Shown piece after piece: positions 1-63,990 of a stretch of DNA of 64,000 nucleotides (its first letter is position 1; every line of letters starts with the position of its first letter). A program made the position numbers and the translations under genes. Source of the DNA: Paraphysomonas bandaiensis. Lineage: Eukaryota; Protista; Chrysophyceae. A model generated the notes under the pieces. The model did no database searches. It saw only the letters and a program-made list of their open reading frames with translations, and was not told where the DNA came from. The stretch covers positions 1 through 64,000 of the forward strand of contig CBFFRP010000012.1 in assembly GCA_965644295.1 (NCBI GenBank), read 5' to 3'.

Positions 1-162
1 CTTGGTGCTAGTGATCTTGGGTGCCAGCGGTATACCATTGCGCGGTGACTCTTCGCGGGAGTCACTAACTGAGTTTAGGTCTAAACTTGGAAAAAAGTGT
101 TTTAATAATAATACCGTTATTACTGTGCTTGTTGGTTCAGTGTAGGTGTTGTTGTAGTTTTA

Positions 163-5021: not shown

Positions 5022-8000
5022 TGTTCTTTTCAGTTTAGTACTTGAAGTGACTGTATAAGATATGCATAGGGCACATAGAGGTGTATGGTGTTATATTATG
5101 CAGTGTGTAGTGTACGGCTGTAGAATAGAGGCATAATTTCCTCTTACTGAGAAGTTCTGTAGTAACGATAAAGAGAACCTTGCTTTGACTACCTGTAGTG
5201 TAGACTGTGTGAAAGCAACGGGGGTATTCCGTCCGTTTATTGATTTGTAACATCCGTAACATTCGACCGAGTACCGTATTTTTCTCTGCGTAAGAGGAAA
5301 TTATGAAGAAGACAACGAACGACAAGCCAACAAGATTTGCAAGATTCGGCAAGAAACCGAGCACCGATAGACCAGAACATGTACCGACTTTAAGATACGG
5401 TGCCAACTCGAACTTCGCCACATTCAAACAGAGGCTTGTAGTGGTGGGCATGCAAAAGTACGGTGATCTTGCACGCCTAGTAGAGCTGGACAAATATTAT
5501 GAGCCCGATGCGATAAACCCAGAGGATTTTGATTTGGAAGACGACCCCTATGGAGTTAACCTCGACCTGATGAAGGACAAGACCAAGACCAGAGGGAGAT
5601 TAATAGACAAGATGCGGAACGATAGATCGGCATTCTACTCATTCATGGTAGACCATCTGAGCCACGAATCAATGGATGCAGTCAAGCTATTAGATGAATA
5701 CGAGCTCATGAACAGGACTAAGGATCCTCTACTACTATGGCTGGCTATCAAACAAACCCACAAAGTATCTACTAACTCCAGCGTAAGTACAGTGGTACGA
5801 GCAGAAGCGAGGAAAAGGTACAAAGACGCTAAACAGGGAGCATATGAGAGTATAGTTACTTATAAGGAGAGGTTTGATCATCTATTAGAAGCCTACAAAG
5901 ACATGAACAACGCGGAAATGAATGAAGAGGACATCGCGATGGATTTCTTCGAAGGGCTGGACGACACGAGATATGGCGAGTTCAAAACTAGCTATCTCAA
6001 CGATCTAACAATGGGAACGCAAACAGCACCTACGCATGTGAATGAGATATATACAAAAGCATCAAAATATCTGACGCCGAAGAGAGCAACGAGAGCAGGC
6101 GGCGGATCCGCATTCGTGAGCAAATCGAAGTCTGACAAAGGCAAGAAATCAGCAGATAGCGATGATACACCAGAGCAGCAACAAGGGAACGACACGAAGT
6201 CGCACAACAGCAAACGTGGTCAGAAAAAAAGGCAGCTCATATGTTGGGGCTGCGGTGAGCCAGGCCACAGAATGAACGAATGCCCAGACAGTAGTCAAGA
6301 ATCAGAAAACAAGCACTGCACGACAACAATGTTGAACGCCTTCACGTCAGGAAGCGAGCCATTCCAATGGTACGAAGTATTACTCGACAATCAGGCGGAT
6401 GTCTCGGTAGTACACCCAAGACTACTGAACAATGTAAGACCGGCGTCCAGAGGATGCACCGTGGCGGGATTATCGGGACACGCACTGGAACTACCGAATG
6501 TAGGCGAGCTAGACCAATTCTTCACCTGTAAGACAGCAGATGAGCTAAGGGCAAGCGTACTATGTCAGGCGGACGTAGAAGACATATATGAAGTGACATA
6601 TAGGCAGGGAGAGTCTTTCACTGTCCACTTACCTGACAGTGATTTGACTTTCTATCGAAAGAACAAGATGTATGTGGCCGACATGCGCGACTGGGCGACG
6701 GCCAAAGTCAACGTAACGACTGTAGCGGAGCGCGAAGCCCAATATTCGAAAGTAGAAGTCGCGAGAGCGCGAGAAGCACGAGACCTGATCCGAAACTCGG
6801 GCTTCGACTCGGAGAGAGATGCTGTGCAGCTAGTGAGCGACGGAAACGTTACAGGGGTGCGACTTACCCCGAGTGATATCAGAAGAGCTTTTGACATATA
6901 TATGGGAGACCGTTCGAAGCGGTGAGAGGCAAGCAGACGAATAAGAAAGTCAGCCGGCAATACGCGGATCCGGAACTGAAGGCAGAACAGCAGAAGGAGC
7001 AAAGGCTGTACACAGACATCTTCAGTGTGAGACAGCAATCGTTCATGCTCACACTAGCGGAACCATTGGGACTAACCATCGTTACTTCACTCGAAAACGA
7101 AACAACGGATCAGTTGGGATTGGCCCTACAGGAACAAGTAAACCTGTTAAGAAGCTACGGGTACATACCGACAGTTACCTACCTGGACCCTCAGCCGGGA
7201 TTCAAGGCCCTGAGAGGCAAGATCACAGGGATGGAGATTGACGTGGCAGGGGCTGGAGATCACCTGGACAAGATCGACGCGAAGATTAGGCGACTCAAAG
7301 AGACAATACGCAGTGTACATTCAGGGCTACCATGGAACCTACCAGATGCCAACGTCAGAGACCTGGTGAGATACGCCAACAGCCGCATGAACTTGAGGAG
7401 GCCATCCACCAATGGCACAACTGTAGCACCGCGAGTGGCATTGACTGGTCGGAAACCCAATTATAAAAAGGAACTGTCACTGGCTTTCGGGGACTACGTA
7501 GAATGCTATGACCCGAAGGTCAAGAGCAATAACGCGGAGCAGGCCAGAACAGAACCATGTATCGCGCTGTACCCATCCGGCAACGCAAACGGGAGTTGGA
7601 TATTTTTAAACCTTAAAACAAATAAATATGTGAGTAGGACCAACTGGGTGAAGATGGTGACCACGCAAATAGTAATAGACGCCGTGAATAGAATATCGTC
7701 ATTGCACAACAAGTCACACTCACCTGTCACGACCAGTGAGAATGAGAGTCGAGAGATCGAGGATACCACGCCACCAGCTGAGAATGACAAGATCGATAAG
7801 CCGAAGGAGCCTCACGAGGAGGGGCAGATGACAGCAGTTGACACAGACGAAGGGCACGGCCACACAGAAGAGAGAGAGAGAACAAAAATCACGGAACCAG
7901 TCGACGATGATGGCGACAGGGCTGATGGGCCGAGCGAACAGGAGCCGGGCACTGCAACACCCAACGACATCGACGATCCGGAAATTACAGGGGTGGAAAC

Positions 8001-9483
8001 TGCAGGGATGACACATAACACAAGCGAACTACTATCATCATCATCATCAGCCGGAGCAAGGATAGCGGCAGGCACAAGAAGAAAGCCCGTAATGTATCGA
8101 GCCTATCACACAAGCGTAACCAAAGGTTTAAAGGAACACGGCAAAGAAGCCTACCTGGCGATAGTAAGGGAGCTGAAGCAGCTGCTGCATGAAAAAAAGG
8201 CGATAGTTCCAGTACACCGGAGTGACATGTCAAAGACTCAACTCAAACGAACAATTCGATCGCTGATGTTCTTGAAGACGAAATACAACGGACTCGGAAG
8301 GTTCGAGAAAATCAAGGCGAGGCTGGTTGCGAACGGGGCGCAGCAGGACCGGAAACTGTACCCAGACACGTCGTCACCCACTGTGGACATACAGTCAGTA
8401 TTTGCATGCCTAGCAATAGCAGCGAGAGAGGGGAGACATGTATCGACAATTGATATAGGTGGTGCATACCTCAATGCGGAGATGTCAGGCGAAGAGGTAA
8501 TAATGGAATTGGAGCCGATGTTGGCCACAATACTCAGAAAACTAGACCCCACAATCCAGCCGTATGTTGATGAAAGAGGCAAAATATTGGTGCGCCTAGA
8601 CAAAGCGTTATATGGATGCGTGCAGAGCGCCAAGCTCTGGTACAACACGATAAGAGCTTACCTGGAGAGCATTGGTTTCGTGGCTAACCCGGTGGATCAG
8701 TGTGTTCTCAATAGGACTGTCAACGGCAAGCAGTGCACTATAACACTACACGTGGACGATCTACTAGTGCTATCACAAGACAAGCGTGACACCGAGTGGT
8801 TGGTGGAACAACTAAAGAAACAATATGGTGAGGTAAAATACTGTGATGACAAAGACATGTCGTATTTAGATATGCATGTGAGCATGATAGATGACAGGGC
8901 AGTGGTGTCAATGAGGGCTTACCTAGACGGAGTGCTGGAGGAGGCAGCGGTCACTGGCAGAGCAGCATCTCCAGCGACATCATCACTGTTCGCAGAGGGC
9001 GCAGGACAGAAATTGGGGAGGAAGGAGGCTGCCAATTTCCATTCAGTGGTGGCCAAATTGCTATATCTGTCAATAAGAGTTAGACCAGACATCCTGCTCA
9101 GTATAGCGTACCTCACAACAAGAGTGAAGGGTCCGACAATCGGAGATCAGCAGAAGTTGAATCGAGTGCTGAAATACCTTGCGCACACAAGGGATCAAGA
9201 TCTGCAGCTGAAGATTGGAGAACAGCTGCGGGTAAGAAGCTTCATCGACGCTTCGTTCGCCACCCACGAAGACGGAAAAGGGCATACAGGCGTAGTTGTA
9301 CAGCTTGGAGGGGCCACAGTACTATGCCGATCAACTAAGCAACGAATCGTGACGAAAGACTCGACCGAATCCGAGCTGGTCGGCCTATCTGATATGATGT
9401 CTAATGCAATGAGATTACATGAGTTTGTGTGTGGGCAGGGCTATGCGCTTGACCCACCTGTTATTTATCAGGACAACTTGTCG
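5022..9483 (+). mobile_element. CoDi-like Ty1/Copia LTR retrotransposon, 3'-truncated, no 3' LTR
   Basis: Gag-PR-IN-RT-RNaseH order. Candidate 5' LTR 5022-5220 (tgttctttt...gaaagcaacg). RNase H stops at IYQDNLS and joins unrelated repeat DNA. Confidence 0.85.
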
Positions 9484-9510
9484 AATCTCAGTGCGAGTTT
9501 TTTTGGTTGA
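5303..9510 (+). pseudogene. Copia gag-pol polyprotein broken by a +2 frameshift
   Basis: CCHC knuckle CWGCGEPGHRMNEC, protease LLDNQADVSV, integrase core YTDIF/YLDPQ, RT KARLVANG/DIGGAYL/LYGCVQSA/HVDD, RNase H FIDASFA/STESEL. gacatatatatggg at ~6893-6906 carries an extra AT; removing it gives DIYGRPFEAVRGK. Confidence 0.9.
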
Positions 9511-12805: not shown

Positions 12806-14003
12806 TTGTGCAATGTGGGGGGTATATTATTCAAACGTAGTCAATTTGGTGGAATCACCTACTACTAGTTCCACCAATTTTGGAGTAAAACCTAGTCATG
12901 TAGTTAAAATGCAGACAGGCATTGTATACATACATTACACATTACATCAGATTTTCAGAAAAAGAGTTTTTAGTTCTTGTCATTAAGTACTAAAAGCAGT
13001 AATCAGGTATTCTTTAAGATTCCTGCCCCATTCCGAAGGCGTGTGGTCATAGTGTAGGCTCGGTGGTATACCACCAATAATAAGGAGATATTTTATAACA
13101 TTGATTCTTCCACCCGCCTACTACCCGTGTACCAACGTAGCTGACCATCATATAGATCACACACAGATTGTGTTGCCGCCCCACCCGTGTTTACCATTAT
13201 TGCTAAGATTACGCGAGATTTCACATAACTTTTATAGAATATATGTAATTAAGTTAGCACTCTCTAGTAGGACCATGTGTACCTTCCCATTACCTCTAAC
13301 AAATATTACGCGGAGCTTCTCGTGACCACACATTACACAGTGTATAGGCCTAGCGTGACATATTGGGCGCCCCCTCCCCTAGAATACGCGGGGTTTCTCG
13401 TACTGTAGATCTCTAGTTTTTAGTGTATAATGCAAGTTTAGTGTAAATCTCTAGCTAGAGCTTGCTTGGTGCCGATACACAAAGAATACGCTGAGATTTA
13501 TTAACAATCTATACTTATAGCTTTTAGTCACCACTAGCACTTTACTAGGGAGCGCTCTCGGAATGGGGCATCCTGGTCTAAGTGTCATGGCTCTGGCGGG
13601 CTCCTCGTTGATGAAGGCTCTCGTTTTAGCTTGACATCAATGTCTCCTGAGAATTAACTAGATATTTACACCTGGCTAGTAAATAATGCCTAGCTATTGA
13701 ATGTCAGATTATTAAGAAGCGCAAGCTTGTGCGTTGCCGCGACCAACCTAACAACTCGCGCGACACTATATGCATAACATGACTCTCATCTAGTTACTAT
13801 TGCATGCACCGACAAGTGCTCAACTATACAACACGATTTAGTTAGCTACATGGGCATACGACGAGTTGCGTGTTTAAGCCGGATCATACGCTCCTGCCCA
13901 ATCTACTTGTCCTAACACAAACAACTTGCGGTCGGTGTCTTCGGCATATGTCTCCTGTATATATGCGGCAGATCTTTTTAGGGCCCTCTTCAAGGTGGTG
14001 TTC

Positions 14004-15126
14004 TATGCACAAACCGGACTTGCTGGTTTGCTCCCAACAAAATGTATAATAAGGTATGAGTAAACACTTATTATTACTGTTAAATCACCCAACACGGTCA
14101 ACGATATCCGCTAGATAACGCCGCGCAGTATTCCCTCTAAGAATAAAGATCGCTGTTAAGACAGTGTCAAGTAACTTAAAACAATGACATGCAAGGAATA
14201 ACATATAGAATGGTACGCATCTACAGAATGAACCAAGTTCATTTTATATCACACACACCACACCGCATGCATTCTTGCATACACCGTGTATACCACACGT
14301 ATTATGACAATAAAACAAAACTGAATAACAGCGTATGAAACTGAATAACTGCGCATAAAACTGAAATAAAACCATAGTGATAAAACTGAAAAACAGCTAA
14401 CTAAAATGAGTAACGTGATACCGTATTCGCTGATAGTCTACTGCTCTTATCATACTCCCTAAACTCATATAAAACCTATTGCATCTTTACTCTTTCCATA
14501 TATTCCTCTTTAAGCCACACGCTTGCCATAATAGCCACCCACTATGCCTGCTTAGCAGCATCACCATGCTTAGCGTCTATAGTATGCTCTTGAATGGTCC
14601 TAACTCCTGCTCATCTCCCTATCCAGAGCACCATCATGAAAATGCAGCTCACAGAGGTATTGGGCTGTGTACATCCATAGTTCTGCACTTAACTTGAGAC
14701 ATTTATGTTCAGGATGTACTAGCAACATCTGAAGATCCCTTCTTATGCTGTTCTGAGGATGATGCAGAGAGAATTGTGTGTACATCACGTTGATGCTACC
14801 TAAGTCTCTCTCCATTGCCCTTATTGCCTCTACGTCATAAAACAACAGGTGCAGTCGGCTGGCTTCACATGTATTGCAAGTAGAGATAGTGGGTAACGTG
14901 TTTTGAGTGTCGTGATATTAATAACTGCCTAGAGTAGCCGCATGTATGTACTTCAGTGTGAATGGCTTGTTGTAATTCCATGACTCGTGGCTAGATCCTT
15001 GCACTTCCTTCGTAAATAATTGTCTTGTACTGTTTGCTGTCCTTCTTCTGTTGTTGACTCTCTTCTTGTTGTTGAATACCCTATTTCACTACTACACTTG
15101 CTACTATATAAACCCCCAGGGTTACA
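14004..15126 (-). repeat. Gypsy 3' LTR (1123 bp)
   Basis: Matches 21208-22348 apart from 3 substitutions I could see and an 18-bp indel in an aaactgaa tandem block. Confidence 0.95.
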
Positions 15127-15195
15127 CTACCTTTTTCCCTCTCTCTTTTTTTTTTTTTCGATAATAATATAACTCAGTATAAAAATAAGTCAAAA

Positions 15196-18100
15196 TTAAT
15201 GTTGATTGACTTGGGGAAAACGTAGCGCAAAGTCGGAATCTACCAGTACCATAGTTGTCGGATCGAAGTCGCGATGTACAAAACATTTCACGTGATAGTT
15301 ATCAAATCTGTATGTGGCTTTGGTCATGGGATTCTTGACAGAAATTAGCTTCTTGCTGGTCTTATGGTACCAGTGAGTGAGCATAAATTGCATCACATAT
15401 GTAACAGTGGGCGAATCTGGTAGTTGTAGGGCATCATACCAGTCATCTCCGAATACTCTGATATCTACATACACCTCGTCACCCGGTTGAACCGTAGTTA
15501 TTGACTGCTTCCTCTTCTCACTGATATATTTGGCGGCCCCATCCGTGGTATAAATAAGATGATGTAGATAAGGCTTGCTGCTACAGAATTCCTCATAGGC
15601 TATGGAATCAAATAAATCCTGGCTGTAAGGTAGCTCTCTGATATCTCCATCCTTGAAACGTACTGTAAACAACATTGTTGAACGCCGTTCTCTGTCTCCA
15701 GTGTAGTATAAAATAGTGTCAATCTCATGCTGATCATGATCTCGCATAGCCATTTTATAGGCGTGTTCCCTGTCTCCTGGATACAATTTTACATCCCGTA
15801 CGTCTACTTTTGTTACAACACCGGTCACCAAATGCTTGCAGTCAATATCATTCTTATACTGCGATATAACCTGAAACGGTCCTAGGTATCTATGAGACAT
15901 TTTAGGGTAAACCTTGGCCCCTTTGTCAAATAAAACAAAGTCGCCCGGCTGATACTGATTCTGTCGCTGAGGGGATATGCCTTTACTGAAACGTTTGGCC
16001 TTCAACTGATCTTGATATTCTCTCGAACTGCGTTGCAACAGAGCTAGATTATCATTGAGTTTATGTAGTCTGGCGTGGGCTTTCTCTGGTACTTCATCCC
16101 TTCCCATATTGTTATACCTCTCACTCTCAGAACCAAATGTTAACTCAAAAGGCGAATACCCCGTTTCAGATGATACTTCAGAATTCAATACATGTGCCAC
16201 TGTAGGAATCCAGCTGGGGTCTTCAAATACATCTCGCTTCTCTTCTTTCTCGCTGTAATCAAATACTAATGCTCTTAAATGCCGCACTACCTCTCCTATG
16301 ATCCTCTCGCATCCGTTGGCATGTCTATCCGCTATGCTGAATGTGTGTTTGACACCGATATATGAGCAAAGTTGATCAAATAATTGGGATTTTAGATCAG
16401 GTCCTTGATCCGATATGATCACATCAGTATGACCAAATTGACTCCAATACTTCCATACAGTATTAGCAAGATTTATGGCAGTGACTCCCTTCACTGGTTC
16501 GAGGAAGACATGTTTTGTAAACAGATTTACCACCACGTTAATATGTGTGTAGCCTTCTTTACCGTGGGGTGTAATTTCCACTGCATCAATACCGATGGCA
16601 CTACGAGCTGAAGGTGGTTTTAAACTGCGAGGTATGGCTATCAAAGCTTCTTGCATTCCGAGTCGTGTCTTAGCACAGTTGGGACATTTATTAATCATCT
16701 CGGTGACTTCTTCAAAAGATATTCTGTGTCCTGGGCACTTCTTGTTTAACTTAACCCAAGTAGCGTAAGCTCCTTTGTGACCTTGTCTGGCATTATGAAC
16801 TGCTTGAAAACATTCCTCTTTGGATAAATACAACGGTTCCAACTCTTCTTCCTTATCATCCGGATCCATAAAGTTGTTAAGATAGATGTCTAAGTTGCCA
16901 AACATAGTTTCATCAATGTATTCCTCAATGTCCACATCAAGAAATATACCAGCTAAATGTTGCAACTTATGTGCTCTGGAGAGCCAATCTGCTAACCAAT
17001 TTTGAGAACCTGGAATGTGTCGAATCATAAAGTTAAACGATTGCAGGTATATACGCCATCTCACAATTTTCGGTACTTCAGATGCCTCCATCCACACTAA
17101 ATTGTTATGATCAGTCTCAATAATAAACTCCTTGCCCACTAAATAATATGCGAGGTTTCTGACAGCATAATAGATACCGTAGCCTTCCTGCTCTATCGTA
17201 GCCCATCGTTGTGCTTGCGTTGAGAATTTTTTCGATATAAATGCTATTGGTTGTAACTGAACAGTACCATCCTCTAAAATTTTCTTCTGTAATAATACTG
17301 CTCCTACTCCTAGCTCGCTAGCATCAGTTCTTAGGATCCATTCTAACGAATAGTCGGGATAAAATAACTCACAGGCGTCTTGTAGACCTTTTATGAATCT
17401 TCGATACTCCTCTTCATAATCATGCTTCCATGTAGATTTATCCCAGTTGAAAGTTTTCTTGGTCATGTCCGGAAGATGACCTACCAAGTCAGAATATCTA
17501 GGTGTGAACCCTGAGAAGAAAACTCCTTTTCCTAGTAAGCTTCTGGCCGTCTTAGTACTCGTAGGCATTGGAATGTTAGCCAAAGCTTCCTTCTTATCAG
17601 GACTGACCTCATACGATTTGTGTCTGCACACGTAGCCAAAGAAATTCACTTCCCGGAATCCCAGCCAACTCTTAGGCATCTTGAGTTTTACATTACGTTC
17701 TATACACCTGTCAATTATCATTTCGAACTTCTTATAAGCGTCTGTGGCATCCTCCGCTAAGATTAACATATTATCAAAAATTACGATGGCCCAGTCGCTG
17801 AAATCCGAAAACAAATCTCTTACAACTTCTTGAAGAATTCCAGTGGCAGGTGCGATGCCTTCAGGCATAAACTTCGGAGCGAACTGTCCCCATGGTGTTT
17901 GGATGGACAATCTTTCCGAGGTTTCTTCATGCAAAGCTACTTGATGGAAAGCATTAGTCAGATCGATGTCCATGTACAAAGGAAAGTTTGTGATCTTCTG
18001 AATCTCGTGCCTGACATTGGGGATAGTATGATTTCCTACCTCCATGTGCTTATTTATTTGCACATAATCACCACAGAATCTTATGTAGGGTGGCGTAGCC

Positions 18101-19197
18101 TTTGGTGCGACTACTAAACATGATGCCCATGGCGATCTGCTTTTCCCATAGAAGTATCCACATAACCTACGAAATTCCTTCTCAGACGCTTCCCAAAGTT
18201 TCGGGTTGATGGGTCTGGCTTTAGGCTTCATGCGCTCCGGCAAAGTCTCTTTCCATTTCAAACGCAAGGGCTCTATTCCTTTTATGCCACTCCATTCCTC
18301 TGGAACAAAGACTTTCTCTGCCTTTCCTTTCAATAATGCTACTATATCCGTATTACACCGAAGTTCCTCACTAACATGTTTGTCTATCAAGTCATGGTAA
18401 TCCTGAACTGCTTCTTGCCTAGGCTTCCCTAAGAAAGTCAATGCATCCCCAAAGTTTACGGGCAGTTCCACTTCAGCTTCCTCTGGCGCTTCCTCATCAT
18501 TGGATTTTAGCCACGGCTTGATTAAATTGTCTCTTGTAAACGTATTTGATCTTCTCTGTTCCAGATCTTCTGTGTCTTTCATCTCTTCTATTTGGTTTAA
18601 TTGCGAGTCTAGGACATCCTGCTCCTTTAGCTCCCGGTTAGCCTGTCTAAGCAGCTCGTCCATAAAAGGATATAATTTACCAGTGAGTGCCGGCAAACCC
18701 AGTATTATGTCCTGACTCTTCATGTCTAAGACGAAAAACTCTCCAGTGTATGTGTGAGTCCTCGCTCTCTTGTCTTCAACTTTCAAATTTAACTTCACTG
18801 CCTCCTTCAAAGGTTTCACTGTACGACTGTCTGCCAATATGACTCTGCACTTGGTCTTCATAATATCTTTGTCATCTAGTCTACTTCGTATCCTCTTGAT
18901 TAAATCAGCACTAACATAATTTGCTGACAAGGCTCCCGTATCACATAATATATATACTAATTCTTCAATATCCATTTTTCTGTCTAGCACTACTCTTCCT
19001 ACCGTGTGACTACTGGATAGAATTTTCTTATCTGGATAACTGGCGTATAAAACTGAAGACCTATTGTCTTCTTGCTTCAGTCTACGTAAATCAAAATCCT
19101 GCGAAAGCGTTCTCCTCTTATCATCTTCACTCTCGCAAGATTCTTCATGTTCGACTTTATGCCTACTATGTACATATTCAGTGTCTCTACTTCCTAG
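15196..19197 (-). CDS. Gypsy Pol: protease, RT, RNase H, integrase, chromodomain-like C-terminus
   Basis: LCDTGA; RFCGDY; DIDLTNAFHQ; MPEGI; IFDN; TDASELGVGAVL; ETDHNNL; ADWLSR; HHCC (H..H..CPNC); IGIDAV/ISDQG/NGCER; YLGPF; EIDTILYYTG..MLFTVRFKDG. The frame is open from the gag stop (19197) through to the annotated ORF start 18990. Confidence 0.93.
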   Translation of the reverse strand, partial: LGSRDTEYVHSRHKVEHEESCESEDDKRRTLSQDFDLRRLKQEDNRSSVLYASYPDKKILSSSHTVGRVVLDRKMDIEELVYILCDTGALSANYVSADLIKRIRSRLDDKDIMKTKCRVILADSRTVKPLKEAVKLNLKVEDKRARTHTYTGEFFVLDMKSQDIILGLPALTGKLYPFMDELLRQANRELKEQDVLDSQLNQIEEMKDTEDLEQRRSNTFTRDNLIKPWLKSNDEEAPEEAEVELPVNFGDALTFLGKPRQEAVQDYHDLIDKHVSEELRCNTDIVALLKGKAEKVFVPEEWSGIKGIEPLRLKWKETLPERMKPKARPINPKLWEASEKEFRRLCGYFYGKSRSPWASCLVVAPKATPPYIRFCGDYVQINKHMEVGNHTIPNVRHEIQKITNFPLYMDIDLTNAFHQVALHEETSERLSIQTPWGQFAPKFMPEGIAPATGILQEVVRDLFSDFSDWAIVIFDNMLILAEDATDAYKKFEMIIDRCIERNVKLKMPKSWLGFREVNFFGYVCRHKSYEVSPDKKEALANIPMPTSTKTARSLLGKGVFFSGFTPRYSDLVGHLPDMTKKTFNWDKSTWKHDYEEEYRRFIKGLQDACELFYPDYSLEWILRTDASELGVGAVLLQKKILEDGTVQLQPIAFISKKFSTQAQRWATIEQEGYGIYYAVRNLAYYLVGKEFIIETDHNNLVWMEASEVPKIVRWRIYLQSFNFMIRHIPGSQNWLADWLSRAHKLQHLAGIFLDVDIEEYIDETMFGNLDIYLNNFMDPDDKEEELEPLYLSKEECFQAVHNARQGHKGAYATWVKLNKKCPGHRISFEEVTEMINKCPNCAKTRLGMQEALIAIPRSLKPPSARSAIGIDAVEITPHGKEGYTHINVVVNLFTKHVFLEPVKGVTAINLANTVWKYWSQFGHTDVIISDQGPDLKSQLFDQLCSYIGVKHTFSIADRHANGCERIIGEVVRHLRALVFDYSEKEEKRDVFEDPSWIPTVAHVLNSEVSSETGYSPFELTFGSESERYNNMGRDEVPEKAHARLHKLNDNLALLQRSSREYQDQLKAKRFSKGISPQRQNQYQPGDFVLFDKGAKVYPKMSHRYLGPFQVISQYKNDIDCKHLVTGVVTKVDVRDVKLYPGDREHAYKMAMRDHDQHEIDTILYYTGDRERRSTMLFTVRFKDGDIRELPYSQDLFDSIAYEEFCSSKPYLHHLIYTTDGAAKYISEKRKQSITTVQPGDEVYVDIRVFGDDWYDALQLPDSPTVTYVMQFMLTHWYHKTSKKLISVKNPMTKATYRFDNYHVKCFVHRDFDPTTMVLVDSDFALRFPQVNQH

Positions 19198-20847
19198 TCA
19201 AGCTCGAGTACCCGAGGGTTCTCTTCGCATGATGGAAGTTTGTGACACAGCACCCGAGTCCGAGGTGCCTTGAACAAATTTATCAATCTTTAATTTCATT
19301 TCCTTAGCCGCTTTAACCAATTCTGGACCATGGTGCAAATACTTGCAGTTGTCTCTCTTGCAAGTTCCCGTGAGTATCTTCTGTAAGCATCCATACTTCT
19401 TGTCAGAGTTGGTAGGTGGTCCCACCGCATGTAGATGTTCAGGAATCTCATCTTCCTCTTCAACTGACTCATTTAGATCAATACTCAAAGAAGCATCTGG
19501 TTTTAAATCCGCAGAAATGGTCACGGTAGGTGCTGCTGGTTCTGGTAAATAATTCCTCCAGTCATCTTCCTCAGCTGGTGATTGCTCCGCATCACTGTCT
19601 GGAACTTCATACGCTCCTTCCTCGATGGCATTTAGAGGTTTTAAGACACGAGGTTTTGAAAATATCTTCTTCTCATTCACCTTCTTCTCTCTGTAGACTC
19701 TCAACCTCTCCTTGTGCTCTGTTAAACATTTGTATGGGATTTCCCTAACAGCTACACTCAACTGATACTCATCAGAAATAATTTCGGTGTACTGATCAAA
19801 GAATTCCTGCATGTTCTTAAACTTAGTTTCTGTCATGCAACTCCATACATGTTCGAAGTACTCTGCATCATTACACGTTTTGAAAAGCCGAATAAGTCCT
19901 CCCGGCTTGTCATCAATTCTCGGGCACCAGTCCTTGTTGCCCTCCAACATAATGTTAAGCATTCTTCCGAACTCCGATATCAATTTTAGCTGTTGATGGT
20001 AGAATGTCTCGTGGTTCACGGGAGATACAACAGCCCATCCCATGACTCTGGAATGTCGTAGGGCTTCCTCTAATTCCTTGTAAAACGCTGGTCTAGAAAA
20101 CACTTTGGTCTCGTTGGCTATCACTCTAATAAGATCTGTAATACCAAGCGATCCCAGTTGTCCCTGCGTCAACTGGTATTTGGAACGCAGGTGCTCCTTG
20201 CATGCTTGAGAGAGAATTTTCTGAACTCTGACTTTCGTGTTCTCTTCCTCCTGAAAATTCATGATTGCTTTGATAGCTTTCGTCACCTTTGATAGCTGGA
20301 AACTATCTATTCTGACATTGCACTCCTTAGCCTGTCGCATCACCACTTCTCCACTCGAGGCTACCTGTCTCTCGCTGCTGGCAATCTCTCTGAATATAGA
20401 ACCTTTGACTGACTTTACATCGAATGGATCTGATTCATCGTTGGTTGAAGTTCGCGTGGGAATAATTGCGTCGATAGACTGCCTTCTGGACGCCTGAGCA
20501 ATCTCATGTAACACGGAAGGTCTACCCTTCTTTTGCTTCTCAGCATGTCCTTGTTTCGGCTTTGCCTCTTCTACGGCTTCTTCCTGGCTAAGTTCACTGG
20601 CAGGTGCTGGTGAATTTCTAGGAGGAGATGGTTCCGGAAATGAATAAGTCCCTTCCAGGACAGCTACTCTTACTCTCAATTCCTTGAGTTCATCGCTGAC
20701 CTCAGCTACGTTGTGCTTGAGCCCAGCTACATCATCTTTTACCCCAGCTACTGTCTCAGTTAGAGTATTTACAGCACCCGTTATTTGCTCTACGAATCCC
20801 TGCATTAGACGCTGCAGGTCTGTGGCTTCGTCTTGATTATTATCCAT
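19198..20847 (-). CDS. Gypsy Gag with N-terminal coiled coil and a CCCH-type zinc finger
   Basis: 549-aa ORF directly upstream of and in frame with pol; C-x8-C-x4-C-x3-H at 19333-19389. Confidence 0.85.
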   Translation of the reverse strand: MDNNQDEATDLQRLMQGFVEQITGAVNTLTETVAGVKDDVAGLKHNVAEVSDELKELRVRVAVLEGTYSFPEPSPPRNSPAPASELSQEEAVEEAKPKQGHAEKQKKGRPSVLHEIAQASRRQSIDAIIPTRTSTNDESDPFDVKSVKGSIFREIASSERQVASSGEVVMRQAKECNVRIDSFQLSKVTKAIKAIMNFQEEENTKVRVQKILSQACKEHLRSKYQLTQGQLGSLGITDLIRVIANETKVFSRPAFYKELEEALRHSRVMGWAVVSPVNHETFYHQQLKLISEFGRMLNIMLEGNKDWCPRIDDKPGGLIRLFKTCNDAEYFEHVWSCMTETKFKNMQEFFDQYTEIISDEYQLSVAVREIPYKCLTEHKERLRVYREKKVNEKKIFSKPRVLKPLNAIEEGAYEVPDSDAEQSPAEEDDWRNYLPEPAAPTVTISADLKPDASLSIDLNESVEEEDEIPEHLHAVGPPTNSDKKYGCLQKILTGTCKRDNCKYLHHGPELVKAAKEMKLKIDKFVQGTSDSGAVSQTSIMRREPSGTRA

Positions 20848-21207
20848 AACTGTCTATAGTTATTTTCGGTGAATAGCTTATTGGGGTAATATACTATCAA
20901 CGGGCAAATCCGTCCGCACTGGATCAGGTATTTCTTCCAACTCACTGTTCCCAAAATTGACTTAAAACAATTACAGGTTAATCAGCTAGCTACGATAATT
21001 GTCTGTTATGTTCCTATGTGTATACTAAGTTTTCTGCAACAACTCTACTGTCTTGACGTGCAAATCCGTCCGCACTGTACAAGATGAGATATTATTACGT
21101 CAAACGTCGACGACACAATGAGATATAACTTCCAATCTAAACAATTGCTATGTACTACTCGATTACGCAATATATAAGGCCTTGTGGGACTAGCAGTAAT
21201 TAATTAC

Positions 21208-22348
21208 TATGCACAAACCGGACTTGCTGGTTTGCTCCCAACAAAATGTATAATAAGGTATGAGTAAACACTTATTATTACTGTTAAATCACCCAACACG
21301 GTCAACGATATCCGCTAGATAACGCCGCGCAGTATTCCCTCTAAGAATAAAGATCGCTGTTAAGACAGTGTCAAGTAACTTAAAACAATGACATGCAAGG
21401 AATAACATATAGAATGGTACGCATCTACAGAATGAACCAAGTTCATTTTATATCACACACACCACACCGCATGCATTCTTGCATACACCGTGTATACCAC
21501 ACGTATTATGACAATAAAACAAAACTGAATAACAGCGTATGAAACTGAATAACTGCGCATAAAACTGAAACTACGCATAAAACTGAAATAAAACCATAGT
21601 GATAAAACTGAAAAACAGCTAACTAAAATGAGTAACGTGATACCGTATTCGCTGATAGTCTACTGCTCTTATCATACTCCCTAAACTCATATAAAACTTA
21701 TTGCATCTTTACTCTCTCCATATATTCCTCTTTAAGCCACACGCTTGCCATAATAGCCACCCACTATGCCTGCTTAGCAGCATCACCATGCTTAGCGTCT
21801 ATAGTATGCTCTTGAATGGTCCTAACTCCTGCTCATCTCCCTATCCAGAGCACCATCATGAAAATGCAGCTCACAGAGGTATTGGGCTGTGTACATCCAT
21901 AGTTCTGCACTTAACTTGAGACATTTATGTTCAGGATGTACTAGCAACATCTGAAGATCACTTCTTATGCTGTTCTGAGGATGATGCAGAGAGAATTGTG
22001 TGTACATCACGTTGATGCTACCTAAGTCTCTCTCCATTGCCCTTATTGCCTCTACGTCATAAAACAACAGGTGCAGTCGGCTGGCTTCACATGTATTGCA
22101 AGTAGAGATAGTGGGTAACGTGTTTTGAGTGTCGTGATATTAATAACTGCCTAGAGTAGCCGCATGTATGTACTTCAGTGTGAATGGCTTGTTGTAATTC
22201 CATGACTCGTGGCTAGATCCTTGCACTTCCTTCGTAAATAATTGTCTTGTACTGTTTGCTGTCCTTCTTCTGTTGTTGACTCTCTTCTTGTTGTTGAATA
22301 CCCTATTTCACTACTACACTTGCTACTATATAAACCCCCAGGGTTACA
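21208..22348 (-). repeat. Gypsy 5' LTR (1141 bp; TGTAAC...GTGCATA)
   Basis: Direct repeat of 14004-15126. Confidence 0.95.
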
Positions 22349-23175
22349 GTTCTGGAAGGGAGAATAAAGTAGCTCTATAGCGCCGGGTCCTCCCACGGTC
22401 ACGAAGCGGTCTCACTGGTGCAATTTTGCACACTGACGCATGAAACAGACATCTACCAAAATCTGTTACAAATTCAAGCTGACTCCAATGTCTTCCCTCC
22501 ATTGTGTGCACTCGTCCAGCACATGCATCCACCTTGCACTCTTCTCCCGAGTGACTTGCACTAGTAGGAAACCGTGCACCTTCCCCGCTCGGATGAAAAC
22601 CTACTAAAAGCAAGAATAACATAAAAGCACCACAATGTACCTGACACTGCTTGGAGAACAGTGCCAGTGCCTTGATATATAATCTCAATGACCTGGGTCA
22701 GGAGAAACCAAGACTAGGCAGTAGACGTGTGAGAAGACATGACAGGTCTAATCACATCATTGCCATTGCCATGCATCCATGAGGACAGTTTGACGCATTA
22801 CCTCGGTCATTTGCCACACAGATACTGAATAATGTGAACTCATACTCAGCATCAATCACTCAAAGCAAACGCAGGGAGCAAGCAGAATGTTGATATACCT
22901 GACATCTGCTGACTTCAGGTTTTTTGAGTTCTTAAGGTGAACATCCCGGATGCTTAACTTCAGCAGGCAGCCCAATACCCCGGTTACCCTTCTGGTGGGC
23001 CCTGTCCCGGATGCCCTTGAGGTGGGCTCATTCCCGGATGCCTGTTTATTTTCGTCAGGGCCCAAAAAGACGTCTACACAAGTGACACTTATTAGTAGTG
23101 TCCCTTGTACCACACAAGCATTTGGCTATATGAGTGGGCAGAACAATATATATCTGATGACTATATAATAATATA

Positions 23176-23264
23176 CGGCTCACGTTAGTTTCCCGGAGAA
23201 ATATCTCCGGTACTTATATCCCCCAGAACACCACGAAAAGGTGCGAGTCCGACTTTGTTGAGGG
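23176..23264 (-). ncRNA. HDV-like self-cleaving ribozyme fold at the retroposon 5' end
   Basis: P1 CCCUCAAC/GUUCUGGG (imperfect), P2 CGG(A)CUCGC/GUGAGCCG, P3 ACC/GGU with L3 UUUUCGU, GG, P4 CCGGAGA-UAUU-UCUCCGG, J4/2 CUAAC. Confidence 0.75.
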
Positions 23265-24004
23265 TAATGCCTAGCTAGGACACAATACATACCTGAGTCA
23301 TGTGCACCTACGACAAGCTCCACGTCTTATTTCTGTTAAACACATACATGACCTTAAGTCGGGGTATTACCAAAACCTGTTGAAATGTATAAAACCCGGT
23401 AAATTTTTTGATGATAGTCGTAAAAGGGTACTGCGCACAATAATTAATAAGCAACTATGAAGATAATATTAATAGTGTAAAGTACATTATTCATAATTTT
23501 TACTACTTTCTGAAATATTGCTTCAATGGCACCGACTATACATATACCTCTCATCTCATCATCTTTGTGAATTACCTTATGATCATTGCCACTTCTACCA
23601 ATCAATATAAATTATATATATATTAGTTCCATAAAACTAATTCATGCCATTTTATTTAGTTCATATAATACTGCTTTCAACTGCTGTATTATTCGAACAA
23701 CGGTTATAATTTACAAATTTTAAAATGCAGCTATATTAATAAAAGCAAAATTCTACAAGTAGAACGATATAATAATACTAATAATATTATCTATCATCTC
23801 TATAAACTACTTTACTTTTTTCTTCGACTATCTAAAACGTAAAACGTTAAAATGTGTTCTGATAATAATCTACAGTAGTAACTTTTTAATTTATTTGTCA
23901 GTAGTTGTCCAAGCTGTTATCGAGCTCTTCAACGAATATTTGTGCCAGTCAGAACTACATACATGTGTAAAGCTTCTACACTCTACACTGTATTCTTTGA
24001 GTCA

Positions 24005-27586: not shown

Positions 27587-27860
27587 GTCGGACCCACACC
27601 TTCTCGTGGTGTTCTGGGGGATAAGTACCGGAGATATTTCTCCGGGAAACTAACATGAGCCGCATATCTAGTCAACATAAATCGTTCTGCCCACTCATAG
27701 CCAAATGATTGTGCGGTACAAGGGAAACTAGTTAGTGTCACTTGTGTAGACGTCTTTGGGTCTTGACAATTAAACAGGTATCTGGCCTGCTGATGTTAAT
27801 CATCCGGGCTGTTCACCTGAAGGACTCAAAAATCCTGAAGTCAGCAGATGTCAGGTATAT
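27587..27860 (+). mobile_element. 5' module of the ribozyme-retroposon family, lacking the first ~12 nt
   Basis: gtcggacccacaccttctcgtggtgttctgggggataagtaccggagatatttctccgggaaactaacatgagccg, followed by the shared body. Confidence 0.8.
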
Positions 27861-35482: not shown

Positions 35483-35689
35483 TGTGTCATTTTGTTCCGC
35501 GTTTAACATTAATTCGTTCTTTTTTATTGTGTCAGTGTGTGCAAGTATTCATAATAATTTCATATGTTTCACTCAAAAGTCGACTACGTTTAAACGGAAT
35601 GAAAAAGAAGTAGACTTTCTTCGTGATATGAGAAAGCCAATATAAGTACAGTGCAAAGTTATATACCATGTTCACAGTTAATTATCATA

Positions 35690-36795
35690 TTGAAAATCTG
35701 ATTATTAAGAAGCGCAAGCTTGTGCGTTGCCGCGACCAACCTAACAACTCGCGCGACACTATGCATAACATGACTCTCATCTAGTTACTATTGCATGCAC
35801 CGACAAGTGCTCAACTATACAACACGATTTAGTTAGCTACATGGGCATACGACGAGTTGCGTGTTTAAGCCGGATCATACGCTCCTGCCCAATCTACTTG
35901 TCCTAACACAAACAACTTGCGGTCGGTGTCTTCGGCATATGTCTCCTGTATATGCGGCAGATCTTTAGGGCCCTCTTCAAGGTGGTGTTCACAGCAGCAG
36001 GTAGTCTGGAAGGGAGAATAAAGTAGCTCTATAGCGCCGGGTCCTCCCACGGTCACGAAGCGGTCTCACTGGTGCAATTTTGCACACTGACGCATGAAAC
36101 AGACATCTACCAAAATCTGTTACAAATTCAAGCTGACTCCAATGTCTTCTCTCCATTGTGTGCACTCATCCAGCACATGCATCCACCTTGCACTCTTCTC
36201 CCGAGTGACTTACACTAGTAGGAAACCGTGCACCTTCCCCGCTCGGATGAAAACCTACTAAGCAAGAATAACATAAAAGCACCACATATGTACCTGACAC
36301 TGCTTGGAGAACAGTGCCAGAGCCTTGATATAATCTCAATGACCTGGGTCAGGAGAAACCAAGACTAGGCAGTAGACGTGTGAGAAGACATGACAGGTCT
36401 AATCACATCATTGCCATTGCCATGCATCCATGAGGACAGTTTGACGCATTACCTCGGTCATTGGCCGGCCACACAGATACCGAATAATGTGAACTCATAC
36501 TCAGCATCAATCACTCAAAGCAAACGCAGGGAGCAAGCAGAATGTTGATATACCTGACATCTGCTGACTTCAGGTGTTTTGAGTTCTTAAGGTGAACATC
36601 CCGGATGCTTAACTTCAGCAGGCAGCCCAATACCCCGGTTACCCTTCTGGTGGGCCCTGTCCCGGATGCCCTTGAGGTGGGCCCATTCCCGGATGCCTGT
36701 TTATTCGTCAGGGCCCAAAGACGTCTACACAAGTGACACTTATTAGTGTCCCTTGTACCACACAAGCATTTGGCTATGAGTGGGCAGAACAATAT
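35690..36795 (-). mobile_element. 5'-truncated copy of the ribozyme-retroposon (ribozyme missing) flanked by a 139-bp direct repeat
   Basis: Colinear with the 13697-23264 copy; 35551-35689 equals 36796-36934. Confidence 0.88.
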
Positions 36796-37252
36796 ATAAT
36801 AATTTCATATGTTTCACTCAAAAGTCGACTACGTTTAAACGGAATGAAAAAGAAGTAGACTTTCTTCGTGATATGAGAAAGCCAATATAAGTACAGTGCA
36901 AAGTTATATACCATGTTCACAGTTAATTATCATACTGTGTATAGAAAACTACCTTGGTTTCATTTAAAATTGCTTATATATATGTAAACAATTTAAACAA
37001 GTACCTACCGTGAATTTCTGTTCATTTTGCGTTTTACTGATGATGCAATTTGACCATTATTACATACTTATACTTGGTGCATTTATATGCTATATGATTA
37101 GTAAAGTTATTCTCTTTGCACTGTTGAGTCCATTGTATGATACTATATATATTGTGCAATTGAAGTAAGCTAATAGGTGATCCCAACTCCTAGTTGTGAA
37201 GGGTAAATATGATGGTTACAAAAGAATTAAATTCTGTTGCTGGTGTATGTCT

Positions 37253-52754: not shown

Positions 52755-53530
52755 CTACTATTTAACGCTACGAAAGCTGCTTGTGCGTCACCGCAAGCAC
52801 CAGGGTGCAACCACGTGTTGAGTTCTACATTTGAGAGAAATTGAAAGCTGTAGTTCAAAGATATTTGACTTATGATTGTTAAAAGAAGAATACAGAAGTG
52901 GTTAACTGTATTATGAGAACTAATATCATAATAGCAATCACAGTAGTGAAACTGAAATGTATTGACCGTATAAGACCGCGATATCTAAGATTGTATGGAA
53001 ATGGTTGATAGTTGAGACATGAATTTGGCAATTGACAAGTGATATTGAACTTAAGTTTATTATATTATTATGTTACTATATGTATCAGCATAGAGTAAAA
53101 GTATTGTTCAGTTATGTCAATTTCCATAACTCCGCTCTATCACTCGAAGCAAACGTAGTGAGCAAAGAGAGTGTTGATTCCTGACATCTGCTGACTTCAG
53201 GATTTTTGAGTCCTTAAGGTTTATGGTGAACGGCCTGGATGCTTCACCTCAAGGGTATCCAGGGTATTGGGCTGCCTGCCAAAGTCAAGCATCCGGGCTG
53301 TTCACCTAAGAAAGGCATCTTGGTGCTTGCGGTGACGCACAAGCAGCTTTCGTGCTTTCGTAGCGTCAAATAGTATGATATGATCAGAGTTAAGCATCAG
53401 TTAGTTAAATTGTTTCACTACATTAGTTCTGACCTTACACGCCTATTGCTAATAATCAGAGATTCACTACATGGTAGTTACCCCCCAGAATACCACCACA
53501 AAAAGGTGCGAGTCCGACTTTGTTGAGGGA
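52755..53530. mobile_element. Cluster of rearranged retroposon modules in both orientations
   Basis: 3' module reversed 52755-52813, body 53130-53310 with internal inversion, 3' module 53317-53470, half ribozyme on the minus strand 53481-53530. Confidence 0.7.
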
Positions 53531-57875: not shown

Positions 57876-58341
57876 GTGAATGTCTGGCAATAGGCGTGTA
57901 AAACAATTTAACTAACTGGTACTTAACTCTGATAATATCATACTATTTAACGCAACAAAAGCTGCTTGTGCGTCACTTCAAGCACCATGGTGCAACCTAT
58001 TTCGCTCTCTGTCCTAAAAAGGTGAACTGGGCCCGGATGCCCCTGCTGAGTTGGACCCATTCCTGGATGTTTGAATTCAGTAGTAGGTAGCTCAATAGCC
58101 GGATACCCTACAGGTGGACCCATTCCAGGATACCTGTTTATTCATCAAGGCCCAATCAGGGCTACACAAGTGATATACTAATTAGTGTCCCTTGTACTTC
58201 ACAACAAGCATTAGGCTATGAGTGAGCAGAGCAATATCTGCGGACTATATATGCGACTCACGATAGTTTCCCGGAGAAATATCTCCGGTACTTATTCCCC
58301 TTAACACCACGAAAAGGTGCGAGTTCGACTTTGTTGAGGGA
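57876..58341 (-). mobile_element. Short full-length retroposon copy with ribozyme head
   Basis: TCCCTCAAC... to ...CAGACATTCAC(TACTAC); no clear TSD. Confidence 0.82.
58254..58340 (-). ncRNA. HDV-like ribozyme fold, second complete copy
   Basis: P1 CCCUCAAC/GUUAAGGG, P2 CGA(A)CUCGC/GUGAGUCG (compensatory relative to the 23176 copy), same P3/L3/P4, J4/2 CUAUC. Confidence 0.7.
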
Positions 58342-63500: not shown

Positions 63501-63990
63501 TCCCTCAACAAAGTCGGACTTGCACCTTTTCGTGGTGTTCTGGAGGATAAGTACCAGAGAGCCACAAACATAGTCAGCAGACATTCTTCTGTCCACTCAT
63601 AGCAGAATGCTTGTGTGGTACAAGGGACACCAATAAGTGTCACTTATGTAGACGTCTTTGGGCCCTGACGAATAAACAGGTATCCGGGAATGGGCCCACC
63701 TCAAGGGCGTCCGGGACAGGACCCACCTGAAGGGTAGCCAAGGTATTGGGCTGCCTGCTGAAGTCAAGCATCCGGGATGTTCACCGTAAGAACTCAGAGC
63801 GGAAGTGGTCGCACCTTGGTGCTTGCTGCGGCGACGCACAAGCAGTTCTCGTCGCGTTAAATAGTAGGATAAAAAAAGTGTGTACTGATTAGATACAGGT
63901 AGAGGTCTAACTAGTTTGTCTAGCATTCATATAGCTACTATAAGTTGGTTCAGGTTTTTAACGCCAATTGCTAATAATAAGACTTTCAAT
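63501..63990 (+). mobile_element. Short full-length retroposon copy (ribozyme P4/J4-2 deleted)
   Basis: TCCCTCAAC...GACTTTCAAT flanked by acacggaaag(cc) at 63489-63500 and 63991-64000 (cut by the window end). Confidence 0.88.

Follow-up and report, generated by a model that had tools for sequence, protein, structure and literature searches.

A putative HDV-like, L1Tc-style ribozyme module heading a SINE-like retroposon family in Paraphysomonas bandaiensis

A dispersed family of non-coding elements in the chrysophyte Paraphysomonas bandaiensis begins with a conserved 5′ module, the head, which raises the prospect of a self-cleaving RNA at the start of a short interspersed nuclear element (SINE)-like retroposon. 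The window analysed here is the 64,000-nt stretch at positions 1 to 64,000 of contig CBFFRP010000012.1 (assembly GCA_965644295.1), and the copy on which we focus, copy 1, has its head on the minus strand at 23176-23264. We propose that the head, 87 nt in the family consensus and 89 nt in copy 1 through an extra AU in J1/4, is a ribozyme like that of hepatitis delta virus (HDV), in the style of that of L1Tc, possibly combined with a Pr77-like promoter, and that it defines the 5′ end of the family. Our confidence in this proposal is evenly balanced. The letters of this segment are exactly those transcribed in a first-pass annotation made from the sequence alone, which had suggested the ribozyme.

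The element itself and its ends are well defined. As that annotation had claimed, the fold starts exactly at the element end given by target-site duplications (TSDs), copy 1 being flanked on both sides by the 11-bp repeat GCTAGGCATTA. Across the genome the 5′ boundary at CCCTCAAC is sharp in all 30 copies fetched. The element is 1214 bp long and non-coding, its copies are ~99% identical to one another, and the family 3′ end, ...AATAATCAGATTTTCAATA, is without poly(A). Direct repeats of 10-14 bp, variable in length, can be read in about 20 of 23 full-length copies. The sharp 5′ end, variable TSDs and missing poly(A) identify it as a non-coding, SINE-like retroposon of the class without long terminal repeats (non-LTR), inserted by target-primed reverse transcription. 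A DNA transposon or an LTR element was considered and rejected on the variable 10-14-bp TSDs, the lack of a terminal inverted repeat, the defined but unlike ends and the empty-site allele described below.

The family is also abundant, and its head appears to travel more widely than any one body. The core CGTGGTG-N11-AAGTAC, searched as an exact pattern, occurs in 668 genome copies against one match for the reversed pattern, so that the dispersed family has at least 668 members with the core. The first 18 nt are identical in 599 copies; nt 1 is T in 29, A in 11 and G in 5. Searching a 62.5-Mb assembly of the same genome with the first 265 nt of the element gave 2379 first-look candidates (40 scored matches were near full length), whereas the 165-nt tail of the 1214-bp family gave only 178, both being pre-filter counts from queries of unequal length. 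Within the window, the head is 87-95% identical in three of the four subfamily copies compared, the next 110 nt 70-83% and the sequence beyond 19-44%; the exception is the copy at 63502, whose head is deleted in the part given in Table 1. Together, the candidate counts and the subfamily comparison suggest that the head is common to several families with different bodies.

Public sequencing runs, examined as Logan contigs, show that the family has been active recently. The element is present in runs labelled as marine metatranscriptome and as three coded organisms. At locus L005 (G000:C427), a joint of 523 to 1750 found in contigs from both DNA and RNA libraries skips 1226 bases. Because this is the length of the element plus one TSD copy, the joint represents an empty-site allele, which implies a recent insertion, one that is polymorphic within or between populations. 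The contigs showing the empty-site allele of this 1214-bp insertion came from the DNA of one coded organism and from marine metatranscriptomes. Contigs from polyA libraries cover most of the element, with DNA carry-over possible.

Every part of an HDV-like ribozyme can be drawn in the head, as first suggested, in the order P1-P2-P3-L3-P3′-P1′-P1.1-P4-J4/2-P2′, where P, L and J denote paired, loop and joining segments. P3 (ACC/GGU) closes L3 (UUUUCGU) with its U...CG core and is paired in 93% of cells in an alignment of 77 heads. The candidate catalytic C stands before P2′ in the context C75-U-A-A-(C)-GUGAGCCG, and J4/2 is intact in most copies.

How readily such a drawing arises by chance was gauged with a relaxed descriptor, which asked for a 3-bp P3 around U-N3-CG-N and a P1′ directly after P3′ (6 or more of 8 possible pairs, or all 8 around a 2-nt bulge), then for a hairpin no shorter than 5 bp and for C-N-A-A followed, after at most 1 nt, by an 8-bp P2 in which a bulge was permitted. 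On both strands of 326 kb of real DNA it matched 114 times, always starting at a head; on 40 Mb of first-order Markov sequence of window composition it matched 18 times, or ~5e-7 per position. That rate is optimistic, because the descriptor was tailored after sight of the candidate, and it extrapolates to ~56 random matches in a genome of this size. The nested fold, moreover, is no more stable than shuffles (z -0.76). These three points favour the view that the drawing is an accident at the end of an ordinary repeat, which we nevertheless regard as highly improbable: besides the low rate per position, the match begins precisely at nt 1 of a retroposon, a coincidence that seems very unlikely, and its motifs are collinear with those of the proven L1Tc ribozyme (L1TcRz). 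Judged from sequence, the head is compatible with an HDV-like fold beyond chance and similar to L1TcRz at the level of motifs.

The sequence of the 77-nt Pr77 (R77) oligonucleotide of L1Tc is published (PMC1874656), and it bears out the L1Tc motifs cited in the first-pass annotation. A global alignment with the head has 53/77 identical columns (z 3.9; 2 of 2000 shuffles score as high), and a local alignment is weaker (z 1.9). Pr77 can be parsed into P1 (1-7 with 31-37), a P3 of ACC/GGU around L3 UCAACGU, a 7-nt J1/4 (UCUAGUA) and a P4 hairpin followed by GGAAGCUAAG leading into P2′. The head likewise has an ACC/GGU P3, a 7-nt L3 ending in CGU and a P4 hairpin, and its consensus J1/4, AUAAGUA, is also 7 nt long and ends in AGUA. 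Compared with this oligonucleotide and further Pr77 ribozymes, the head shares the CCCU start, CACC-N4-CGUGGUG, GGG-N3-AGUAC and GGAA-N-CUAA before P2′, with GCACC in place of CCACC and GGAAACUAAC in place of GGAAGCUAAG. In both, P1′ ends in a run of G and P2 is internally irregular. P1.1, a single pair in L1TcRz (PMC3185411), would in the P1 register preferred below be swapped from A23-U38 in L1Tc to U28-A46 in the head. P1, P2 and P4 differ in sequence from those of L1Tc, P2 and P4 being unrelated, yet they pair; these exchanges come from two sequences compared by eye and are not statistical covariation.

L1TcRz and several relatives self-cleave in vitro at nt 1 (PMC3185411, PMC4035085). In L1Tc, Pr77 is also a promoter for RNA polymerase II (Pol II), with an essential downstream promoter element (DPE), CGTG, at +25 to +28 after CCACC (PMC4748587). 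The head has a counterpart, CGTG at +30 to +33 after GCACC, and could be mainly a Pr77-like internal Pol II promoter with a focused start at nt 1, its HDV-like drawing being secondary or non-functional. An element that codes for nothing and has no Pol III-type head depends on read-through or on a promoter of its own, and the element does appear in contigs of polyA RNA libraries; the weak P1 and absent covariation described below would also fit. Pol III transcription is argued against by a run of four T at nt 26-29, within L3, and by the 1.2-kb length; ARAGORN found no tRNA-derived head, and the Rfam scan no likeness of the head to tRNA, 5S or 7SL RNA. However, the putative DPE is just 4 nt long and lies inside the L3/P3′ core that a ribozyme needs too, and a promoter leaves unexplained why complementary P2 strands lie 58 nt from each other, why there is a P4 hairpin and why CUAA immediately precedes P2′. 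As both functions coexist in L1Tc, a promoter here does not exclude a ribozyme, and promoter activity of Pr77 has been demonstrated only in trypanosomatids. We consider it unlikely that the head is mainly a promoter.

P1, a key helix of the fold, is irregular. Mismatches in P1 had been flagged from the outset: the register drawn in the first-pass annotation, 1-8 with 36-43, leaves U4.U40 and C5.C39 unpaired in 73 and 74 of the 77 distinct heads, respectively. With two central mismatches and fewer cells paired, that register is probably wrong. A better fit pairs 1-5 with 41-45 (C1-G45, C2-G44, C3-G43, U4.G42, C5-G41) and 6-8 with 36-38 (A6-U38, A7-U37, C8-G36) around a C39-U40 bulge, so that 90.6% of cells are paired, as against 85.1%. 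P3′ still abuts P1′ in this register, P1.1 becomes the single pair U28-A46 and, by comparison, the register appears to be the one homologous to that of L1TcRz. CU, UU, AU, GU, AA, CC, CA and CG all occur at 39-40, a free variation that the bulge would explain. Also in favour of the bulged register, the nested minimum free energy (MFE) fold pairs C1-A6 with U40-G45. Taken alone, this pairing (register B, CCCUCA with UGGGGG over 6 bp) leaves a non-canonical 4-nt linker between P3′ and P1′; it was rejected in that form and merged into the bulged register. Finally, U1 goes with A45, in 3/6 against 1/94 cases among 100 unselected rows (Fisher p 5e-4) and in 11/24 against 1/15 in a set selected for a non-C first base.

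Several results weigh against a functional ribozyme. The association of U1 with A45 may come from shared descent. Neither register gives a continuous P1 of about 6-7 bp from the cleavage site, the helix being interrupted by mismatches or the 2-nt bulge, and its energy is -3.8 to -6.1 kcal/mol, compared with -12.8 for the P1 of L1Tc; published work associates even a single U-U or C-C mismatch in P1 with lost activity in vitro (PMC3774820). P1.1 amounts, by register, to two G.U pairs (U27/U28 with G45/G44) or to U28-A46 alone. The 77 distinct heads offer no covariation beyond shuffled controls, either for the model as originally drawn (0.111 versus 0.110) or for the preferred register (0.094 versus 0.094), in a test of low power because the copies are young, mostly dead and vary mainly by CpG transitions. 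The exchange of a P2 G-C for an A-U pair that had been noticed in the copy ending at 58340 is real and results from G16A and C85U, but genome-wide it is not enriched, U85 accompanying A16 in only 4 of 19 copies with a readable partner (of 31 copies with A16, 20 were newly read and 2 were known). In addition, a single contig from a polyA library runs across a copy's 5′ junction into another flank.

Profile searches count on the same side. Rfam, whose HDV-type families include HDV_ribozyme, CPEB3 and drz-Agam, returned no HDV-type match for the whole window at the gathering score, nor for 23100-23350 at E up to 10; these models are narrow and unable to encode pseudoknots. An nhmmer profile of five published trypanosomatid Pr77 sequences matched no head in the 326 kb, and a covariance model (R1) built from four published Pr77 sequences, with P1 and P3 pairs only, matched none of the window heads at E up to 10. 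Because all three approaches miss the head, its likeness to Pr77 is one of motifs and architecture rather than demonstrable homology. A scan of metagenomes for related heads gave five matches, all attributable to chance and in unrelated contexts.

Many of these observations would suit a structured RNA module at the 5′ end, or the relic of an HDV-like ribozyme in decay, that no longer cleaves and owes its retention to a different role, for instance in RNA stability, in binding the proteins of a long interspersed nuclear element (LINE), or as a translation or transport signal. The tandem mismatches or bulge in P1, the low P1 energy, the minimal P1.1 and the failure of profile and covariance models all point that way; the literature ties P1 mismatches to inactive ribozymes (PMC3774820), and among trypanosomatid Pr77 signatures, some that can be drawn with an adequate fold were inactive in vitro (PMC4035085). 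Against this, the core (the U...CG of L3, C75 followed by U-A-A, and P3) is intact in the master of a very recently active family, and it is in the head that the subfamilies are most alike. On balance, a non-cleaving module of this kind seems to us rather unlikely, if worth keeping in mind.

If the head is instead an active ribozyme, a simple cycle can be envisaged. Pol II would transcribe the element, either by upstream read-through or from an internal promoter of the Pr77 kind contained in these 87 nt, and the nascent head would fold into a double pseudoknot. C75, which corresponds to 23188 in the window copy, would then catalyse scission just 5′ of C1, leaving an RNA that starts exactly at element nt 1. 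Endonuclease (APE) and reverse transcriptase (RT) encoded by a LINE could copy this RNA into new sites in trans, the LINE presumably recognising ~20 nt that it has in common with the 3′ terminus of the element.

Candidate partners are plentiful, as APE-bearing LINEs with single open reading frames (ORFs) of 2000-3700 aa are numerous in the genome. A TSD-delimited LINE on contig C433 has an ORF of 2823 aa with SET (aa 897-1001), APE (1067-1304) and RT (1761-2054) domains, and its end, ...AAATAATCAGACATTCACTA, has ~20 terminal nt in common with the tail of the SINE-like element. This LINE, the only one with a defined 5′ end, lacks the head, so the head was not simply inherited from it; a second LINE family, on contig C644, has no head in the 9.4 kb read, a stretch that stops short of its 5′ end. 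These absences, too, speak against our proposal, since they leave the presumed partner, as far as examined, with no ribozyme of its own. Among the pairs found in the literature (L1Tc/NARTc, ingi/RIME, and R2 and its SIDEs), the non-autonomous member has its ribozyme by inheritance from its own LINE, and in trypanosomes the module is common to the LINE and its deletion derivatives, unlike the situation with the C433 LINE. The SET domain of the C433 LINE is of the histone-methyltransferase type and lies upstream of APE and RT; a SET domain within the ORF of a non-LTR retrotransposon is unusual.

The Pr77-type dual module, combining an internal promoter with an HDV-like ribozyme, has so far been described only in trypanosomatid ingi/L1Tc retroposons. 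Much more speculatively, and in our view improbably, such a module might also exist in a marine protist as the portable 5′ head of several SINE-like families that parasitise an unrelated SET-APE-RT LINE without the module. If true, the module would have to be of ancient origin or to have been captured horizontally or in modular fashion, and the finding would define a class of SINEs whose 5′ end is made by self-cleavage and not by Pol III initiation.

The finding would matter in several ways. First, if the head cleaves, a recently active SINE-like family of at least 600 copies would have its 5′ end set by an HDV-like ribozyme that its LINE partner, as far as examined, does not carry. Second, the likeness to Pr77 would carry a promoter/ribozyme module beyond kinetoplastids and provide a second, distant example with which to separate the nucleotides that serve transcription from those that serve catalysis. 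Third, the irregular P1 would serve as a natural trial of the distortion that an HDV fold can bear. Should cleavage not occur, what remains is a retroposon that is abundant but ordinary and carries a conserved 5′ module.

Other copies of the head in the window are listed in Table 1. The 3′ half of the head (23176-23210) recurs three times in the window within three mismatches, where none is expected by chance. The two copies reported initially were recovered by alignment and self-BLAST, at 58253-58340 and 27587-27662, and the L3 of the latter reads UUCUCGU as claimed; because its first 11 nt are missing, it has no 5′ strand of P1, and it is presumably a dead copy. In old copies among the 77 aligned heads, recurrent changes are mainly C-to-T and G-to-A at CpG sites (14/15, 20/21, 30/31, 54/55, 68/69, 79/80 and 86/87), suggesting methylation-driven decay of these repeats.

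Some heads occur in unusual arrangements. Outside the window, at G000:C69:5006-7072, four head cores at an exact spacing of 681 bp carry the same private substitutions, and we interpret them as tandem repeats that arose from an element with a head. At L033:2714-2756 (-), a partial head of 42 nt (nt 1-42) is joined without a gap to the front of a complete head, which may reflect a template jump or a nested insertion. In the flanks of L002, L073 and the window copy at 53479-53529, inverted LINE/SINE 3′ tails (...GCCTATTGCTAAATAATCAGAC...) adjoin heads or LINE 5′ regions, which hints that the elements insert into one another's tails.

The body of copy 1 is interrupted by a Gypsy LTR retrotransposon whose LTRs of 1.14 kb (21207-22348 and 14003-15126) are 98% identical and whose pol ORF (15196-18990, 1264 aa) is intact, with RVT_1, RNase H and integrase domains. 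Upstream of pol lies an ORF of 549 aa that matches nothing in Pfam. Copia-type (RVT_2) reverse-transcriptase ORFs lie at 163-2297 and 5303-9510 of the window. With the Gypsy element and the retroposon copies, these indicate that the window consists largely of nested transposable elements.

Table 1. Features of the head, its copies and associated elements (window coordinates unless stated; consensus positions count from element nt 1)
Feature	Location	Strand	Remarks
Head of copy 1, putative HDV-like/Pr77-like module	23176..23264	-	89 nt
P1 5′ strand	23257-23264	-	
P2 5′ strand	23243-23251	-	A17 bulged
P3 5′ strand	23240-23242	-	
L3	23233-23239	-	
P3 3′ strand	23230-23232	-	
P1 3′ strand	23220-23229	-	
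J1/4	23211-23219	-	
P4	23193-23210	-	
J4/2	23184-23192	-	candidate catalytic C at 23188
P2 3′ strand	23176-23183	-	
Consensus P2	14-16 and 18-22 with 80-87		8 bp, A17 bulged
Consensus P3	23-25 with 33-35		ACC/GGU
Consensus L3	26-32		UUUUCGU, 7 nt
Consensus P4	53-59 with 64-70		7-bp hairpin
Consensus J4/2	71-79		GAAACUAAC, C75 then U-A-A
Whole copy 1, SINE-like non-LTR retroposon (1.2 kb)	13695..23264	-	3′ end ...AATAATCTGACATTCAATA, no poly(A)
Upstream TSD copy	23265..23275	-	11 bp, GCTAGGCATTA
Downstream TSD copy	13684..13694	-	11 bp, GCTAGGCATTA, adjoining element 3′ end at 13695
Gypsy LTR retrotransposon nested in copy 1 body	14003..22348	-	interrupts the retroposon, not part of it
Full-length head, diverged subfamily	58253..58340	-	G16A with C85U, AA at 39-40, G45A, A78U in J4/2
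Head copy, first 11 nt absent	27587..27662	+	L3 UUCUCGU
Head copy keeping P1 to J1/4	63502..63560	+	P4, J4/2 and P2′ lost
Partial head	53479..53529	-	about first 50 nt
Partial head	37253	+	
5′-truncated 1.2-kb family copy	35688..36798	-	~element position 113 to 3′ end, no head
TSD-delimited LINE, ~8.7 kb	contig C433, G000:C433:107000-116900	-	12-bp TSD, 12-nt 5′ UTR (untranslated region)

Three groups of known systems come closest to the head. Like the Pr77 modules of L1Tc, NARTc, ingi/RIME and SIDER, which non-autonomous elements carry as well, it begins at nt 1 of a non-LTR retroposon. It differs in its P1 (8 pairs with a 2-nt bulge, or two mismatches, against 7 perfect pairs in L1Tc), in a longer J1/2 and in a host that is no trypanosomatid and, to judge from the marine metatranscriptomes containing the element, appears to be marine.

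With the ribozymes of R2, R4, Dong, Baggins, RTE and the R2 SIDEs (PMC3774820; PMC3414825), the head shares its 5′ position, the double-pseudoknot order, a conserved core of P3 and L3 and, in J4/2, a candidate catalytic C. Its presumed role would be theirs too, namely to free the element RNA from a longer transcript so that its 5′ end falls at the element start or at a set distance from it. It differs in having no sequence or Rfam match, in a J1/4 of 7 nt as against 0-2 nt in R2, in an irregularity of P1 that is central and not at the top of the stem, and in a carrier that is a SINE-like element of dispersed, not site-specific, insertion. As in classical SINEs, which combine a tRNA-, 7SL- or 5S-derived head holding an internal Pol III promoter with a tail taken from a LINE, that carrier is short relative to its LINE, non-coding, abundant and flanked by TSDs, with a 3′ terminus resembling that of a resident LINE; unlike them, it is 1.2 kb long and begins with a ribozyme/Pr77-like head.

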